DNA of 64,000 bases from Podarcis bocagei. Its lineage: Eukaryota. Under the pieces are notes generated by a model. That model worked only from the letters and a program-made list of their open reading frames with translations, was not told the origin of the DNA and made no database searches. Positions within the stretch are counted from its first letter, which is position 1. The number at the start of each line of letters is the position of its first letter. The position numbers were made by a program, and so were the translations under genes. Below are positions 14,638 through 62,530 of the stretch, in pieces. The DNA lies in assembly GCA_964188305.1 (NCBI GenBank), contig OZ076903.1; one strand, 5' to 3'.

Positions 14638-14769
14638 TTTAGGAAAGTTTTTAATATTTAATGCTGTATTGTTTTTAACAGTCAATTGGGAGCCGTCCAA
14701 AGTGGCTGGGGAAACTCAGCCAGATGGGCAGGGTAAAAATTATTATTATTATTATTATTATTATTATTG
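14638..14769 (+). mobile_element. L2 LINE 3' terminal fragment with (ATT)n tail
   Basis: GTGGCTGGGGAAACTCAGCCAGATGGGC hairpin end shared with 55977-56322. Confidence 0.8.
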
Positions 14770-16208: not shown

Positions 16209-16520
16209 GTTTCCCCAGCCACTCTGGGCAGCTCCTAACAGAATATTATTATTATTAATAACAAAAGTAATAAAACACCAAACATTAAAAACTTCCCTAA
16301 ACAAAGCTGCCTTCAGATGTCTTCTAAAAGTCAGATAGCTGTTCTTTCCTCGACATCTGATGGGATGGCGTTCCACAGGGTGGGCGCCACTACCCAGAAG
16401 GCCCTCTGCCTGGTTCCCTGTAACCTCACTTCTCGTAGTGAGGGAACTGCCAGAAGGCCATCAACACTGGACCTCAGTGTGGAGATGCTCCTTCCGGTAT
16501 ACTGGGCTGAGGCCATTTAG
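16209..16520 (-). mobile_element. L2 LINE 3' fragment
   Basis: Encodes RAFWVVAPTLWNAIP, the typical L2 ORF2 C-terminal motif; reverse-complement match to 55977-56322. Confidence 0.85.
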
Positions 16521-21351: not shown

Positions 21352-21400
<49 letters not shown>

Positions 21401-21480
21401 CCCTGCCCATCTGGCTGTGTTTCCTCTGTCACTCTGGGCTGCTTACAGCATATATAAAAACAGAGTAAAACACCAAGCAT
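21352..21480 (-). mobile_element. L2 3' end with (ATT)n tail
   Basis: (ATT)n run next to CCCTGCCCATCTGGCTG...CACTCTGGGCTGCT. Confidence 0.7.
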
Positions 21481-22149
21481 TATGAGTCATGAGGGCCCGG
21501 ACAGTGTGTGTATGAACTTAACGTTGCTTAGTTTCTTTTTTAGATGCTATTCTGTTAATGTTGTTACTATCATTTTCTACATTATAAATGCCATATTGAG
21601 TTGTTACTCATATAATATGACTGTAATTGTGGTGTCTACCTTATTTTTTAGTCACTGCGTTGTTAATACTGTTTTGTAGTTTGCTAATTTTTGTTGATTT
21701 TTAATTATCTTATTATTATTAATTTGTGATGTTCTATTACGTTTTATTGTGTCATTGTTATTTATTGTTTGTAAGCCACTTTGAGATTCATGTGAATGGA
21801 AAACGGCCCAGAAATACAGTAAATCAAATCAAGCATTAGCAACACATGGGGTTATTAGGTGTTTAGGTAGAAATTTAGCTTAAGAGTATGACTTAGGGGA
21901 CTCATCAACAGCTTGTTAAGTAATTTGTTCAACATATATGGGGCTATTTAATAGCAAAAGTTCTGACAGCGGTGAGGCTCATTAGGCAAGCCTGCTGGAA
22001 GTCCCATGCCTGCATAAGCTTACACTACTTTTCTCTTCCCCACGAGTTGACATGTGTTGCAATAAGCTCATGATGATCACCGGACAGATCAAGAGCAGCC
22101 CTACAGTGAGTCACACAACATAGTGTGGTCAACGTGCAGATCTACCTCT

Positions 22150-30139: not shown

Positions 30140-31563
30140 TTGGATAAGGAATAACTCAGTTACCAAGCCATATGCAATTCAGAAATCGTTCAGATAATGT
30201 ATCTGGTAGAAGTGCATCAAGAGGTATTCCCATTCTAGCAATGCTTTCTAAAGTAGTCTTAAAGTATAATCAAGAATTCTGCTGTGAACTTGTAAAAAAT
30301 ATTTGCAACGCACTTTTTTTTTTTGCTCTGGGCAAAGGAAGCTTTCTGGTGCACTTCATCTGACTAAGCTATTTAAAGATTTTGTTTTAAGGTGGCATCA
30401 ACACTTTACTTCCCTGGCAACTATGTCAACAATGTCTTCCTAGCCTAATAGCCTCTGCCTAACTGAATAACTAAGAGGAAAAATTGCACTCATTACTCCA
30501 ACATCAAGAAAATCTGGACAAAAATAATGAAGTTAAAAATAAAAGCTCACCAGATGAAAATGAATGGCATGAACTATTTTCATTGCTATGCATATACTGG
30601 TGTATGAGAATTTTTATTTCAGTCTTATGATCTCTGTGGTTCTCTTAAAATGTGGGTCATATAATATTACTTACACTTTTACAAATAAAACTGAGCATCA
30701 TTTGTTGTTGTCAAATATGATTCTAATCCTTTATAGTAGAATAACTCTATGACCAGAGTGGCTGGGGGAACCCAGCCAGTTGGGTGGGGTATAAATAATA
30801 AAATTATTATTATAATTAATGAGCAGGTAATGAGTACTGTTCTGCATTCCTCTTGTGATTAAACAATAGCTGCATTTTCTTTCCAAAATGTGTCTTGGCT
30901 TCCTTTTAAAACAGCATCTTAGCTAATATAATGTGATAGTTGTATCTAATCAGTAGAAATGTAAACAAACACTGACTGATGAGAAACCTAACAATGCTGT
31001 ACCAGACAAGGGTTTCTGTATTGTCAACCGATCAGATGGTTCTGGGAAGCCCTCGAGAAAGGCTTGAAAGCAACTGGCTGTAAGTGAACAAATGTCTCTA
31101 CATCAGTAGCACTCCATGAATTTGTCTTTTTATGCCATGGCCATCACCACAGATTGTTGCAATAGATTCTGTGACTTAATTATGAATAAAACTTTTTGTG
31201 TTTGTCACTTTTCCCTAACCTACCAGTTATGAGGAATACCTATTCCAAGCAGTTGGGTGTGGGGGAGGAGGAGAGAGAAATATGAATGTCCACATTCCCC
31301 AGACCACATGCACAACTCTATATAAACTACCATGTTCTGTTTCTGCTTGGTTTCCTTCCCCCACCCACCCATACTAAAAAGTCATTAGCATGGTAGCATT
31401 CCTTCATAGAGAAGGTATTCTGCTGCCTGATCATTTTGACTGCCCTGATTTACATCTCTAAAATATCCTTGTAAACCTGTTACAAGCAGAACAGTACATG
31501 GTAATCCAGACAAATACTTTCCACTGGCTTCCACATAAACTCAGCCAAGGCAACCAGTTGTAG

Positions 31564-32386
31564 TGTGAGGACCCGATCCCCGCTTTGTGGAATGAAGACA
31601 CACGGACACAGTGTATAAGGTTAATGGGCAAGAAAAGGCGACAACTTTATTGATTACAGCAAGTGAGAAGATATTGGCTTAGGCATTGGACCACGACAGA
31701 TTGACTCCACCCACTCGGAGAGGGGTGAGCCTAAAAGGGGGTTTATTCACCAGTAGGTGGAGCCTGTTGATGCTAATACAACTATAAGCTCTCCCCTGAT
31801 GTTACCGAGGGTCGTGCCATGGCCCCACGCCACACAGGCATCAGACAGGATCCACAACTGCCGGATTCCTTTAACGGAATACCCAAATTTGAAGGGGTAG
31901 GCGATGGCCACACCTAGCCCTTCCACACACCAACAACACATTCCAATGCCTAACTGCCAAATACCAAAAAAGTTGTGACGATTGCTACGAGGTAGGCAAA
32001 AAAACCCAAAGGCCTAATGCCAATTGGAAAAATTCCTACCAGGCCCCCTGGGCAACCTGGGCGACCAACCAAAGGTCCATAGCAAGGTCAAGCGAAAAGC
32101 TAAGCCCTAAGCCCTAAGCGAGTAGTGGGTGGGTGACTCGCGACGAGAAGGAGAAAAGTGAGGCGGAATGGCTGGCGTAGCGGTACCTTAAACTGCAAAC
32201 CATGCCCCCTCCAAGCCACCCGGTTGGGCGCTTACCTATGGACATGGTGCGCCAGCCAGGAGAGTGGGGCAGGGGGCATAATGCCCCCTGTGTGACGCAG
32301 AAATCGCGTCCCGCCCACAACACCTCCCCTCTCAGAGGAGGAGAGGCTTTATCCACTTGACTAATGCCAGTGGTGTCATGGCCACA
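31564..32386 (-). mobile_element. LTR-like structured terminal repeat, copy A (solo LTR or Ngaro/DIRS-type repeat unit)
   Basis: TG..CA ends; minus-strand CACCCACCC, GGTAGGAATTTTTCC, TAGCAATCGTCACAACTT, CAATGCCTAAGCCAA and AATAAAGTTGT shared with 54620-55468; no clean TSD. Confidence 0.75.
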
Positions 32387-43500: not shown

Positions 43501-44288
43501 TGCGCGGTGCTTATGACCACAGGGAACTTACCCATTTGTATGGGCTGGCCTGTCTCTCACTGTTATTCTTTGGGGGTTCATGCCCTGCCCCAGTAGTCAA
43601 GTTTCGCTGCTGGGAGGTGGGGCAAGTTGCATAAATAGGAGGCGGAGCCAACAGCAGACAGGCAATCAGCTCAGGAGCTTCACCCACCCAACCCTCCCTT
43701 TGTTTAATGTTTCTTGTTTGCAGGTTAACTTTTTCTTCTTGTTTAGCGGGCGCTGCTACAGTCTTTGGACTGGTTGCTGTTGAAGAGCTGGGAAGAAATT
43801 TCCCTGCATTGTCAGGTTTTGTCTTCCCCGTAGCAATTCATCACAACTTTGGCAGTTTAAGGCCTTGGGCAGAATCCTTTAGTCTTTTCATCCCTAAAAT
43901 GGGGGGGGGCGGGGCGGTGAAGTGGTGACTCATGTCCTCCCACTGCGGCGGCGATTCCAGGTTCCCCTCTTAAAGGGGTTGTCACCCATTTGGGTGTGAC
44001 TGGCCATACACTCAAAGGTTGTCAGTGAACTACCCTGCGTGCGGGGATATGGGGTGGGCTGCCTGCTACACTTACGTCTCGCAGAGCACCCCCATACCCC
44101 ATTTTACCCTGAGGAGCCCCAGTTCCCCCAGGTGGGGGGCTGGGAGGGATACACACCCAATGTCTAAGCCAAGGTCTTCCTACATTGGAGAGTTTAATAA
44201 AGTGGCCAAATTTTAATTCCGTAACACGTTGTCATGAGTCATTATTCCTTTCTGGTGGTCCCTGGAGCGGTCGCCGCCTGGTCACGCA
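43501..44288 (+). mobile_element. LTR-like structured terminal repeat, copy B (divergent subfamily)
   Basis: TGCG..CGCA ends; CATAAATAGG TATA-like at 43630; CACCCACCC; TAGCAATTCATCACAACTTT; CCAATGTCTAAGCCAA; AATAAA 44196-44201. Confidence 0.7.
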
Positions 44289-45562: not shown

Positions 45563-45763
45563 TAGTAGATAGGTAGCCGTGTTGGTCTGCCATAGTCAAA
45601 ATAAAAAAATTCCTTCCAGTAGCACCTTAAAGACCAACTAAGTTAGTTCTTGGTATGAGCTTTCGTGTGCATCTGAAGAAGTGTGCATGCACACGAAAGC
45701 TCATACCAAGAACTAACTTAGTTGGTCTTTAAGGTGCTACTGGAAGGAATTTTTTTATTTTGA
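45563..45763. mobile_element. Young Penelope-like fold-back insertion with hammerhead-like core
   Basis: Perfect 77-bp inverted repeat (45596-45672/45687-45763); 12-bp TSD TAGTTGGTATAG (45551-45562/45764-45775); CTGAAGA...CGAAA. Confidence 0.85.
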
Positions 45764-52662: not shown

Positions 52663-52809
52663 CAGTGGCGTAGCGTGGGGGGTGCAAGGGGGGCCGGCTG
52701 CACTGGGCGCAACATCTGGGGGTTAGGGTTAGGGGACGCAAATCCACGGGTTAGGGGGCGCAAATTACTTGCCTTGCCCCGGGTGCTGACAACCCACGCT
52801 ACGCCACTG
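52663..52809. mobile_element. hAT MITE containing TTAGGG units
   Basis: TIRs CAGTGGCGTAGCGTGGG...CCCACGCTACGCCACTG; perfect 8-bp TSD GGCAGAAC (52655-52662/52810-52817). Confidence 0.92.
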
Positions 52810-54179: not shown

Positions 54180-54537
54180 TGTAAGATATATTACTGCTTA
54201 TTTGTCATTTATAGATGTAACAATATATAGCTCTTTGTGTTCCTTATAAGGACAGGAGGATATGGGTGTATCTTTTAGGATTGGATATAGCAATCAGCCA
54301 ATAGGAAATCCAACCAGGCTGATTGGACAGAGGCAGCCACAGGAGGAGCAAAGGGGGCTGGATTAAGGGGATATAAGTGCTGGCCATAATGGCAGGAGGC
54401 CAGGCCAGAGCTTGGTAACCATATACCACTGTGCCTCTCATTTATTTGTCTGACAAATAAATAATTATTTTAATTTCTCTATTGCTGCGTTGAATATTTC
54501 ATTCCAGCTAAGCGTTAACCACAAGCAGGGTGCTACA
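54180..54537 (+). mobile_element. Probable solo LTR
   Basis: TGTA..TACA ends; CCAAT/ATTGG boxes, GATATAAG TATA and AATAAA in LTR order; TSD unclear. Confidence 0.55.
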
Positions 54538-54619
54538 CAACCATTTTGTTTTCCAGGTCAAAAATACTGTTTGGGGGTAGCAGATAACTTCAAACGTTAA
54601 TCTGCTCTTCATTTAAAAG

Positions 54620-55468
54620 TGTTTACTGCCATTGCTTCTCCCTGTTTTTTTTTAAGTTCAGTCCCGTCCCACCACCCAGTTAATATTTCAGTAAATGGGA
54701 TCCTCCTATTAGAGGGTCCTGGTTGCGCGCAGGCCCCTGGGACTTTCCCCCATAGGGGTTAGTTGGTGGGAGAGTAGCTAAAAGCCCTGGTCATAGCCCT
54801 TGGATCACGCCAGGCTGTTTAGCCAATCCCCAGAGGGTGGCGTGATCCCAGGGGCTTAAAAGGCGGCAGTGTGACGCAAGTAGGGGCACTTGCATCGTGC
54901 TGCCGAACACACACCCCTCCTTAGAATTAGGTAGTTTCATCTTTTGTCTTTGCTTTGGTTTGGGTCACCTGTTTTGGAACAGGGGCAGGGTAGGAATTTT
55001 TTCCATTTGGCAAATTGACTCTAGCCACTTGGTTTTTGCCTACCCCTTAGCAATCGTCACAACTTGTAAGGTGGCGGTTAGGCATTGGCTCAGTTGGATT
55101 GTGGGGAGGGGAGGTGCGGCCATCACCTGCCCCTCCAGGAACTGGGTATTCCATTAAAGGAATCTGGGGGTCTTGGATCTCGTCTGAAGCCCACTTGAGA
55201 GGCTAGGGCCATGCCAGGACCACAGGAACCCTGGGGTGAGCTTCGGTTGGTCCGCATCGACGTTGCTCCCTTGTTTGGTTTACCCCATTGGACTATCACC
55301 CAGAGAGGTGGAGTCAGTTATAGTCGGAAGTCAATGCGTAAGCCAATACCGCTCACGTGATTGTAATTCAATAAAGTTGTGACCAAAATTTGCCCCGAAA
55401 CTTAAACTAAAATATGTGTCCGGGTGAAGTTATTTTTGGGGGGTGGGGCCTGGGGGCCTTGAGGCACA
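54620..55468 (+). mobile_element. LTR-like structured terminal repeat, copy C
   Basis: CCAAT near 54824; TTAAAAGG TATA-like near 54866; blocks shared with copy A; AATAAA 55370-55375; flanks AAAG/AATG (imperfect). Confidence 0.75.
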
Positions 55469-55976
55469 AATGTGTTGGCATTATATAACAGGACACAGCA
55501 TACATGCTCTCCACCACCCTTAGAAAACCTCTTAATTCCTAGTTTATTTTATTCTTTGGTAGATTTACAAAAAAAATAGAAAAAATAGAAAGGGGCAAGA
55601 TTAGAGACGGATACACAAAGGATTAAGAAAACAGAGACTCCTTGCACTCCTCTCCCAGGGCGGTCCTGCCCTCTGCCTGCACCTCAGAGCTAGAGCGTCA
55701 CACTAAGTTGGGTCTTGGCAGTCCCAACCTCTCCTCCTCCTCATCTGCCCTCCAGCAGCCACTGCAAGCTGCCCAAGGGAGGAGGCTGCCAGCAGCAGCC
55801 GTGGGAAAGCAACAGGATGCTTCCTCTGTGCCATTGCACTGGCTCATCCTCCTTCCCGAGCTTAGCAGCTGAGGAGCTGCTGGCAGGGAAAATCAGAAGC
55901 CAGAATAGCTTTAGGAATTCCAGACCTGTCCCAGGAAAATAGGGATAATTGGAGGGTATGTAACCCCAAAGCTAAG

Positions 55977-56322
55977 GCTGAAGGAGCGTCTCCACCCCCA
56001 TCGTTCTACCCGGACACTGAGGTCCAGCACTGAGGGCCTTCTGGCTGTTCCCTCATTGCAAGAAGCCAAGTTACAGGGAACCAGGCAGAGGGCCTTCTCT
56101 ATAGTGGCACCCGCCCTGTGGAACGCCCTCCCACCAGATGTCAAAGAGAACAACAACTACCAGACTTTTAGAAGACATCTGAAGGCAGCCCTGTTTAGGG
56201 AAGCTTTTAATGTTTGATGTATTACTGTATTTTAATATTTTTTTGGAAGCCGCCCAGAGTGGCTGGGGAAGCCCAGCCAGATGGGCGGGGTATAAATAAT
56301 AAATTATTATTATTATATTATT
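55977..56322 (+). mobile_element. L2 LINE 3' fragment, young
   Basis: Encodes RAFSIVAPALWNALP; terminal hairpin GGCTGGGGAAGCCCAGCC; (ATT)n tail. Confidence 0.88.
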
Positions 56323-57835: not shown

Positions 57836-58219
57836 CAGGGGTTAGCAAACTTTTTCAGCAGGGGGCCAGTCCACTGTCCCTCAGACCTTGTGGGGGGCCG
57901 GACTATATTTTTTTTTGGGGGGGGCAGTGGCATAGCGTGGGTTGTCAGCACCTGGGGCAAGGCAAGTAATTTGCGCCCCTAACCCCTGGATTTGCGCCCC
58001 CTAACCCCCAGATGTTGCGCCCGGTGCGGCCCGCCCCCCTGCACCCCCCACGCTACGCCACTGTGGGGGGGGGGTGAATGAATTCCTATGCCCCACAAAT
58101 AACCCAGAGATGCATTTTAAATAAAAGCACATATACTACTTATGTGAAAACACGCTGATTCCCGGACCGTCCGGGATTGGGCCGGAATTGGACCCCAGGC
58201 CTTATTTTGCCTACCCATG
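57836..58219. mobile_element. hAT MITE hosting a nested MITE
   Basis: CAGGGGTTAGCAAAC...TTTGCCTACCCATG; TSD CACAAGAC/CACAATAC (7 of 8). Confidence 0.85.
57925..58063. mobile_element. Second copy of the TTAGGG-containing hAT MITE, inverted relative to 52663-52809
   Basis: CAGTGGCATAGCGTGGG...CCCACGCTACGCCACTG; T(G)n duplicated at both flanks. Confidence 0.9.
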
Positions 58220-58699: not shown

Positions 58700-59115
58700 C
58701 TCCAAGTGGGTATAACAGGTTGGCTTCAAAGGCACCCCTTACGCTGTCAGCAGGTCCCACAGCTCGGAAAGCAAGTCTCAAAACTACAATCTTAAAAGGT
58801 CCCTAAGGGTGCCGACTAAATCTTAACTGGTACTGAATAACGTACCTGCTGATTTGACCAGTTAACCAATTTAAAAGCAATCACCTGCAAAAACACCTGC
58901 AACAAAAGCAATCCTGTACAGAGTAGGTGAAAAGCAACTAGGCAGTAAGGCCAATCAGCCGACAGGGGGAGAAATCCTACTTAGCACCCCAAAAGGAAGA
59001 TCAGCAAATGCCCAGGCAGGAGGGTGGGTGCTGCAAAAAACCCCACAGAAAGCTGGGGAAAAGGCTGAGCAGACTTAAACAACCCAACACCCAGTTCTGT
59101 CCCAAACACCAGCAC
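58700..59115 (-). mobile_element. Degenerate partial copy D of the structured LTR-like repeat
   Basis: Minus-strand CACCCACCC; AGTAGG..CCTACT stem with U-rich flanks; GGCACCCTTA/TAAGGGTGCC long-range stem; AAGCCAA. Confidence 0.45.
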
Positions 59116-59131: not shown

Positions 59132-59490
59132 TGAAATATACTCGGAGTCGAGAGTGGATTTCATGCTCTTTATTCAGCTCATAGTGGTGAGGAGGAATGA
59201 AAGTTCCCCCAAAGTATCTGCTTTATATACATTATTTACACAATGGGCTGCACCTGAATTCCGGAATTCTCCTGTAGGCCAATCAGGTTGTGGATTCACT
59301 TTCATCTGGAGCTGGATTGGGTGGTTCCTGCAGACCAATCATACTGCTGCATTGCTCTAGGACCAATCAGACTGCTGCATTTTAGATCCTATTGTTCTAG
59401 GACCAATCAGACTGCTGCATTTTGGATCCTATTGTTCTAGGACCAATCAGACAGCTGCATTTTGGATCCTATTCAACTCAGAACATAACA
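59132..59490 (-). mobile_element. Solo LTR with tandem CCAAT repeats
   Basis: Minus strand TGTTATG...TATTTCA; perfect 5-bp TSD GGCTA (59127-59131/59491-59495); TATATAAA and AATAAA on the minus strand. Confidence 0.9.
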
Positions 59491-60421: not shown

Positions 60422-61038
60422 AGAATCATAGAATTGTAGCGTTGGAAGGGACCCCAAGGGTCATCTAGTCCAACCCTCTGCAATGCGAGAATCTCAACTA
60501 AAGCATCCAAAACAGGTGGCCACCCAACCTCAACTTCAAAACCTCCAAGGAAGGAGAGGCCACCACCCCCTCAGAGACTCCATTCCACTGTCGAAGAAGA
60601 AGAAGAAGAAGAAGAAGAAGAAGAAGAAGAAGAGGAGGAGGAGGAGTTGTTTGGATTTGATATCCCACTTTATCACTACCCGAAGCAGTCTCAAAGTGGA
60701 TAACATTCACCTTTCCCTTCCTCCCCCACAACAAACACTCTGTGAGGTGAGTGGGGCTGAGAGACTTCAAAGAAGTGTGACTAGCCCAAGGTCACCCAGC
60801 AGCTGCATGTGAAGGAGCGGAGACGCAAACCCGGTTCACCAGATTACGAGTCTACTGCTCTTAACCACTACACCACACTGGTGTCGAACAGCTGTTCCAA
60901 CCAGAAAGTTATCCCTAGTGTTCAGTTGGAATCTCCTTTCTTGTAATGTGAATCCACTGGTGTGGGTCCTACCTTCCAGAGCAGGAGAAAACAAGCTTGC
61001 TCCTTCCTCCATGTAAAAGCCCTTTAGATATCCGAAGA
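60422..61038 (-). mobile_element. CR1 LINE 3' fragment interrupted by a SINE
   Basis: AGAATCATAGAAT tail, GGTCATCTAGTCCAACCC; continues after the SINE TSD. Confidence 0.85.
60596..60881 (-). mobile_element. Squam3-type SINE inserted in CR1
   Basis: 7-bp TSD TGTCGAA (60589-60595/60882-60888); long (CTT)n tail. Confidence 0.9.
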
Positions 61039-62285: not shown

Positions 62286-62530
62286 GAGCCAACATGGTGT
62301 AGTGGTTAAAAGCGGTGGACTCGTAATCTGGTGAACTGGGTTCGCGTCCCCGCTCCTCCACATGCAGCTGCTGGGTGACCTTGGTCTAGTCACACTTCTC
62401 TGAAGTCTCTCAGCCCCACTCACCTCACAGAGTGTTTGTTGTGGGGGAGGAAGGGAAAGGAGATGTTAGCCGCTTTGAGACTCCTTCGGGTAGTGATAAA
62501 GCGGGATATCAAATCCAAACTCTTCTTCTC
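62286..62530 (+). mobile_element. Squam3-type SINE
   Basis: GAGCCAACATGGTGTAGTGGTTAA A box, GGTTCGCGTCC B box, short (CTT)n tail. Confidence 0.9.

Follow-up and report, generated by a model that had tools for sequence, protein, structure and literature searches.

A U-rich internal-loop hairpin in an abundant LTR-like repeat of the lizard Podarcis bocagei as a candidate poly(A) clamp

An abundant LTR-like repeat in the genome of the lizard Podarcis bocagei carries a hairpin with a U-rich internal loop which is very probably a selected sense-strand RNA structure. The best single mechanism that can be proposed for it is that the loop would clamp the poly(A) tail of the element's RNA, in the manner of the structures known as ENEs. 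This reading is favoured because it fits the shape and the position of the hairpin and the way in which the poly(A) site is predicted to dock, and it is put forward tentatively, at somewhat short of an even chance. The material was a window of 64,000 nt (the whole stretch of DNA analysed) from contig OZ076903.1 of assembly GCA_964188305.1, and all positions are given in the numbering of that window. A preliminary description of this DNA had reported the hairpin at four sites, considered as four diverged copies of one family; the letters at all four sites agree with it, and three of the sites proved to lie in homologous units.

The repeat unit and its copies

The three units, denoted here as copies A, B and C, and the fourth site, D, are the following.

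54690-55440, plus strand: copy C of the repeat unit (approximate ends, from the rise and fall of contig depth and nhmmer homology to A and B)
31549-32343, minus strand: copy A of the repeat unit (approximate ends, nhmmer)
43589-44285, plus strand: copy B, a deeply diverged relative (profile made from A and C)
58922-58981, minus strand: site D, rejected as a copy

The homology between A and C extends over ~540 nt (E ~1e-44, nhmmer), and copy B, whose identity to its relatives goes down to ~40-50%, was recovered by a profile made from A and C alone (E = 8e-14). All three are discrete non-coding units of ~750 bp with matching homology boundaries; in the DNA contigs, depth over copy C exceeds the single-copy level (~16) from ~54682 and drops after ~55434. 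Site D was excluded from the family, since it escaped the profile of A and C at thresholds up to E = 100, its downstream region lacks all of the family landmarks, and its fold is not stable (z = -0.1, with 81 of 200 shuffles folding equally well).

In sense order, the unit consists of a TATA-like box, the hairpin, a structured stretch of ~320 nt, an AATAAA signal, a GT-rich block and the end of homology. The landmarks outside the hairpin are as follows.

54855-54863, plus strand: TATA-like box, a T/A-rich box aligned in all three copies (putative promoter)
55370-55375, plus strand: AATAAA poly(A) signal of copy C, invariant in all three copies
31646-31651, minus strand: AATAAA of copy A
44196-44201, plus strand: AATAAA of copy B
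55415-55426, plus strand: GT-rich block, TGTGTCCG.GTG, kept in A and C, a candidate downstream element of the poly(A) site

The TATA-like box precedes the hairpin by 133 nt in copy C and by ~130-160 nt across the copies, and the distance from the hairpin to AATAAA is 325 nt in C, 340 nt in A and 368 nt in B. The GT-rich block lies ~40 nt beyond AATAAA, and the best-conserved box of the unit, GTAGCAATCGTCACAACTT, is found immediately 3' of the hairpin and is conserved in A, B and C (exact in A, with one mismatch in C). The alignment of TATA-like box, AATAAA and GT-rich block in all three copies is the signal layout of a U3-R-U5 arrangement, and the unit, as judged from its sequence, fits a U3-R-U5-like terminal repeat; it is called LTR-like here by virtue of this layout. 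Homology among the copies extends beyond the expected cleavage site, indicating that they are DNA-level copies of a unit bearing a poly(A) signal and not processed retrocopies.

Other hallmarks of LTR elements were sought without success. No credible target-site duplication surrounds copies A, B or C, no TG...CA termini were found for the units, and the window holds no second LTR and no internal or split direct repeats. Ten stop-free segments upstream contained no Pfam domain, and no coding partner was found, while strings resembling a PBS and a PPT are suggestive only. The hallmarks of Ngaro/DIRS elements (adjacent RT/RNase H and tyrosine-recombinase ORFs, split direct repeats) are likewise absent beside A, B and C in the window. 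The absence of the LTR hallmarks constitutes weak evidence because the copies are old. The 103-aa stop-free reading that spans the hairpin, used as a protein query, gave zero matches, and 12 metagenome and three viral loci that emerged from an exact-pattern scan with the conserved 19-20-nt box were dismissed as chance, the similarity being confined to the box. In DNA runs labelled with at least five different organisms, 30-41% of the words sampled from copy C (54700-55500) were present, which suggests that the insertion is common to related lizards and old.

The size of the family became apparent when contigs of two lizard DNA runs were placed on 54400-55800 at a likeness of at least 80%. The depth of these contigs, which is not a copy number, was ~16 over the single-copy flank in one run and 8 in the other, and it reached 23,000-98,000 in one run and 7,800-43,000 in the other over 54964-55104, that is, the hairpin with its 3' flank; over the remainder of the unit it ranged from hundreds to ~10,000. 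The family has hundreds to thousands of related copies, and the depth peak identifies the hairpin and its 3' flank as the conserved core of a large family. Among the variants listed, those with a high share of the depth fall in the apical loop (55018, 55020 and 55022), in the 2x2 internal loop of the upper stem-loop (55006 and 55028), in the flanks (54987 and 55047) and at the outermost hairpin pair, where 55045 C>T, in 82% of the depth, yields a G.U pair. None of the listed variants lies in the inner stems or the U tracts except for a shortening of the 5' run by a one-base deletion at 54997 (~8% of the depth), a pattern that is suggestive only. The clipped-end consensuses of other subfamilies carry TTTC, TTTTTTC or TTTCC as the 3' tract before the G and the lower stem.

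As for expression, a bulk RNA run gave ~250-fold depth at 55011-55057, derived from a single diverged relative that retains the hairpin and in which 54996 A>T makes the 5' U run one longer. The strand bias of these reads (254 vs 13) means that, under the usual library convention, they probably derive from antisense RNA, and other RNA bins carry the opposite bias. The RNA reads look like repeat copies embedded in host transcripts, and they included no sense transcript that terminated at the predicted poly(A) site.

Several further repeats were noted in the window. An unrelated and extremely abundant repeat occupies 54400-54540, with a contig depth of 30,000-190,000 vs ~16 in the single-copy flank and with RNA on both strands. 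Inverted copies of a G-rich repeat (~90% alike) flank copy C at 52663-52809 and 57925-58063. An interspersed repeat ending ...GGGGTATAAATAATAAA occurs at 30753-30814, 56254-56317, 14638-14766, 21369-21482 and 16211-16480; it lies ~900 nt from both A and C in unrelated orientation, a proximity that is probably a coincidence. Two 77-nt arms at 45596-45672 and 45687-45763, perfect inverted copies separated by 14 nt, appear, given their perfection, to be a very young fold-back. At 59351-59473, a 40-nt unit is repeated three times in tandem (93-95% alike), and a pair of 169-nt inverted repeats separated by 1.4 kb (60707-60875 and 62295-62463, 94% complementary) may be the terminal inverted repeats of a small DNA transposon.

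The hairpin, its covariation and the larger fold

The structure described originally is both the minimum free energy (MFE) and the centroid fold in copies C, A and B. Its parts are given below, with z-scores computed against dinucleotide shuffles.

54988-55045, plus strand: ENE-shaped hairpin of copy C (-21.3 kcal/mol, z = -3.3)
54988-54994 and 55039-55045, plus strand: lower stem of copy C
54995-54996, plus strand: AA of the copy C loop
54997-55002, plus strand: 5' U6 tract of the copy C loop
55033-55037, plus strand: 3' U5 tract of the copy C loop
55038, plus strand: G of the copy C loop
55003-55032, plus strand: upper stem-loop of copy C
31991-32040, minus strand: ENE-shaped hairpin of copy A (-18.0 kcal/mol, z = -2.7)
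32028-32032, minus strand: 5' U5 tract of the copy A loop
31998-32004, minus strand: 3' U7 tract of the copy A loop
43790-43828, plus strand: hairpin of copy B (-14.7 kcal/mol, z = -3.0)

The upper stem opens with two C-G pairs in all three copies (CCA/UGG followed by UGGC/GCCA in C, CCAA/UUGG followed by GGC/GCC in A, and CCUG/CAGG in B), and the AA on the 5' side and the G on the 3' side between the U tracts and the lower stem are invariant. The hairpin of copy B is shorter, its lower stem is GGGAAGA/UCUUCCC, and its loop consists just of UUUC facing UUUU. Below the loop, the lower stem of A and C ends in two G-C pairs, and that of B closes with A-U. Partition-function calculations in the context of the domain leave the U tracts unpaired (p >= 0.9) in C and B and for the most part in A, in which two U of the long 3' tract can be engaged by the AA.

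The hairpin had also been presented as conserved by covariation across four copies. Site D being non-homologous, and A and C having identical lower stems and thus contributing no covariation, what stands is the compensation in copy B. Its lower stem differs from that of A and C at four of 14 positions, and the four changes add up to two full base-pair exchanges (U-A to A-U and G-C to A-U, columns 14/68 and 17/65), with no uncompensated change, so that this comparison of three sequences does contain the covariation in the stem that is expected of an ENE. The probability that four random substitutions would yield such a paired pattern, by our own calculation, is (21/1001) x (1/9), or ~0.002. Direct reading adds one compensated pair in the upper stem of B, a stem which MAFFT alignments of two or three copies do not render in a structure-consistent manner. 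We also applied to the window a strict ENE descriptor, consisting of two T runs of at least 5, an upper stem (>= 3 bp) closed by G-C and, within 2 nt, a lower stem (>= 5 bp) likewise closed by G-C. It found a single match, copy C, vs 0.02-0.03 expected from Markov simulations of the window. As such a rate would produce hundreds of chance matches genome-wide, the weight rests on the conservation across copies and not on the single match.

The hairpin is retained in all three copies when 420-460 nt are folded: the 421-nt context of C and the 441-nt context of A give the same fold, and in the MFE folds of both the hairpin forms one arm of a predicted three-way junction. Three long-range helices, P0, P1 and P2, enclose a domain of ~320 nt.

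54982-54987, plus strand: 5' strand of P0, GGGGCA (MFE and centroid folds of C, consensus fold)
55391-55396, plus strand: 3' strand of P0, UGCCCC, at the expected cleavage zone (folding of C and of the consensus)
55056-55065, plus strand: 5' strand of P1, GUCACAACUU, within the best-conserved box, immediately 3' of the hairpin
55374-55383, plus strand: 3' strand of P1, AAGUUGUGAC, overlapping the last two A of AAUAAA
55078-55087, plus strand: 5' strand of P2, UUAGGCAUUG
55332-55341, plus strand: 3' strand of P2, CAAUGCGUAA, a 'CCAAT-like' box

The cleavage position was derived from the usual spacing of 10-30 nt. P0, directly 5' of the hairpin, appears in the MFE folds of both C and A and is mostly broken in B; P1, an exact 10-nt complement, likewise forms in both of these folds as well as in the consensus; and the single mismatch in P2, at 55338, is private to copy C, nearly all other copies in the placed contigs having the pairing base. 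In copy B, P0 and P1 are weak or shifted. Within the domain, a second conserved hairpin (55143-55165 in C, with equivalents in A and B) displays a conserved UUAAAG loop on a stem that is AUUCC/GGAAU in A and C vs CCCC/GGGG in B, that is, with three compensated pairs.

The consensus fold of the three copies reaches -68.2 kcal/mol vs -21.4 +/- 4.0 in 200 column shuffles (z = -11.8). Compensated pairs over the whole domain amount to 25 of 105, which is not above the column shuffles (mean 17.8, maximum 32); with three sequences, the covariation of the whole domain is not significant alone. The sense strand of each copy folds better than the antisense (-164 vs -142, -149 vs -135 and -172 vs -155 kcal/mol), as does the consensus (-56.7 kcal/mol in antisense), and G.U cells number 32 in sense vs 16 in antisense, with family-majority G.U pairs at 55045 and 55382. 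The better folding of the sense strand and the doubling of G.U pairs point to the U-rich RNA as the structured molecule.

Comparison with ENEs and other RNA elements

An ENE is defined as a stem-loop with a U-rich internal loop beside at least one G-C pair permitting A-minor contacts (PMC7583470, PMC13541005), and the ENE of the KSHV PAN RNA forms five U.A-U and three A-minor triples (PMC7583470). More than 200 ENEs, mainly from viruses and from plant and fungal transposons, have been predicted and ~10 validated (PMC7583470, PMC12501189). The statement in the preliminary description that transposon-borne ENEs are known mainly from plants and fungi needs widening, since they are not confined there and stickleback fish retroviruses are listed among the hosts (PMC7583470): as cited from Tycowski et al. 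2016, they span plants, fungi, slime mould and stickleback fish retroviruses (PMC7583470, PMC13541005). Examples of ENEs located within LTRs have been described (PMC7583470, PMC13541005). In the Arabidopsis element Evade/Copia93, the U tracts and the neighbouring G-C pairs are both essential (PMC12501189), and the clamp increases transposition (PMC7583470, PMC12501189). The lower domains of double ENEs bear bulges of 3-4 nt (PMC7583470).

When these features were sought in the lizard hairpin, the secondary-structure plan attributed to it, that of an ENE, was recognized in A and C; copy B departs from it by its U3/U4 tracts and A-U closure, and the invariant AA/G spacers are foreign to it in all copies. 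The facing U tracts (U6/U5 in C, U5/U7 in A) are long enough for the ~5 triples expected in C, in A and in the expressed relative, and short in B and in the UUUC subfamilies. In the loop of copy C, five opposed U.U positions are followed below by a possible U.G, the AA bulge and then the two G-C pairs; copy A is similar, and copy B offers at most three opposed U.U positions. Thus, the G-C closure is present above the loop in the three copies, and below it the G-C pairs of A and C are offset by the AA and the G. In all copies, AATAAA and a GT-rich block lie downstream, with no conserved A-rich tract, and the predicted folds of A and C bring the poly(A) site to the foot of the hairpin.

The likeness of copy C to the PAN ENE includes two facing U tracts whose five opposed U.U positions equal in number PAN's five triples, C-G pairs directly above the loop, G-C pairs in the lower stem, and a location upstream of a predicted poly(A) site. 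The lizard hairpin differs from it in the AA and G that separate the U tracts from the lower stem, in its distance of 325-368 nt from AAUAAA inside a three-way junction, and in giving no sequence or covariance-model match. With the transposon ENEs it shares its place in the 3' untranslated part of a retroelement-like repeat; however, most of the plant elements are double-domain with four U tracts, whereas the lizard hairpin is single-domain and belongs to a squamate host.

In searches against Rfam 15, no family reached its gathering score over the whole window, and at E <= 10 in 54600-55600 a single match appeared, to mir-2813. This match, at 54783-54865 on the minus strand, in the U3-like part of C, scored 25.9 bits vs a gathering threshold of 70 (E = 0.03) and was regarded as chance. 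The absence of an ENE match carries little weight, as Rfam may hold no ENE model. A suspected link of GATCTCGTCTGA (~55170-55190) to 5S rRNA was dropped when the Rfam 5S model did not match.

A second point of comparison is MALAT1, as loci combining a MALAT1-like triple helix with mascRNA have multiplied in anoles (Zhang et al. 2017, as cited in PMC10869381). Both cases concern lizard genomes with many copies of a candidate triple-helix module for the 3' end. In contrast to MALAT1, the repeat described here lacks an encoded A-rich tract, bipartite U motifs interrupted by C/G and a tRNA-like structure, and its transcripts would simply be polyadenylated at the 3' end. A module of the MALAT1 type was excluded accordingly, given that the alignment contains no A-rich tract, no tRNA-like structure or gene was found, and neither mascRNA/menRNA nor any other Rfam family matched.

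Finally, the R regions of retroviruses may be structured, as exemplified by the TAR and poly(A) hairpins of HIV-1 and the Rex-responsive element of HTLV-1. The lizard repeat resembles them as an LTR-like unit in which a long structured domain separates promoter and poly(A) site, a helix buries part of AAUAAA, and the fold joins distant 3'-processing sequences. Unlike the lizard hairpin, the HIV-1 and HTLV-1 elements are not known to contain facing U tracts; they work through viral proteins or occlusion of signals, and no homology exists between them and the repeat.

The poly(A)-clamp model and its alternatives

In the clamp model, the TATA-like box would drive transcription of the unit, and the transcript would receive its poly(A) tail downstream of AAUAAA. 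Since P1 and P0 are predicted to pair the sequence adjacent to the hairpin with AAUAAA and with the stretch ~20 nt beyond it, a transcript processed at the folded junction would have its poly(A) tail starting at the junction foot. There, the facing U tracts, with the five opposed U.U of copy C, could hold part of the tail as U.A-U triples, as single-domain ENEs do, and such clamping would slow the deadenylation and decay of the element RNA. The short tracts of copy B, the UUUC subfamilies and the AA/G spacers, which the ENE model does not explain, speak against the clamp as judged from the sequences. So do the possible pairing of the AA with the 3' tract in copy A, the weak or shifted P0 and P1 of copy B, the whole-domain number of compensated pairs, which does not exceed that of the shuffles, the probable presence of the hairpin at the RNA 5' end as well, and the RNA reads, which came from relatives within other transcripts. 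A stronger proposal, that this squamate retroelement family bears a working and pre-positioned single-domain ENE, in which two long-range helices would fold the R-like region of ~400 nt and dock AAUAAA and the cleavage site at the foot of the clamp, is less likely than not.

With the TATA-like box as promoter, R would include the hairpin, which would also lie ~100 nt from the 5' end of the RNA, so a leader function is equally possible; indeed, the hairpin is probably located in an R-like region and hence also near the RNA 5' end. This leads to the main alternative, that it is a conserved RNA arm with another role in R or in the leader and forms no triple helix, a realistic possibility that we place clearly below an even chance. 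The U-rich loop might then bind a protein, either Gag-like or a host U-tract-binding one, or the arm might, together with P1, control the use of the poly(A) site, packaging, export or strand transfer. The position of the hairpin ~130-160 nt after the TATA-like box, which would place it at both RNA ends, agrees with such roles, as do the presence of further covarying hairpins in the larger conserved fold (e.g., that with the UUAAAG loop), the sequestration by P1 of part of AAUAAA, which resembles the HIV-1 poly(A) hairpin, and the persistence in copy B of the stems and the AA/G spacers in the absence of long U tracts. Yet copy B, too, has U-rich sequence on both strands of the loop, no candidate protein can be put forward, and we know of no retroelement leader motif with two facing U5 tracts closed by G-C.

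It could also be argued that the stems merely act as a scaffold, or that the block functions as DNA, through palindromic factor sites or promoter T tracts, with the U runs as slippage-prone filler. The differing lengths of the T runs (6/5, 5/7 and 3/4), the deletion at 54997 and the TTTC consensuses would be explained in this way, and the block does sit in the promoter-proximal region of an LTR-like unit; moreover, the upper stem of copy A contains the motif TTGGC-N5-GCC, which we take to resemble an NF-I site. However, the compensated changes preserve the pairing and not the sequence, the G.U pairs and the lower folding energy of the sense strand indicate RNA, and both strands of the loop stay pyrimidine and U-rich despite deep divergence, so that we consider this explanation unlikely. 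That the hairpin is an ordinary one in repeated DNA, unselected and inherited by descent, would accommodate the hundreds of genome-wide descriptor matches predicted and the stem identity of A and C, but it is very improbable in view of the survival of the fold in copy B at ~40-50% identity by compensated changes, the status of the block as the best-conserved part of a family of very many copies, and the z-score of the consensus fold.

Should the poly(A) clamp prove not to be the function of the hairpin, the repeat would still contain a well-defined conserved structured RNA domain of ~420 nt. If the clamp reading is true, an amniote mobile element would possess a built-in module for the protection of its 3' end, and the triple-helix clamp strategy, with its vertebrate precedent in fish, would be extended to the mobile elements of amniotes. 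The family would then offer many natural sequence variants for structure-function work, and host transcripts containing sense copies of the repeat could gain altered stability.
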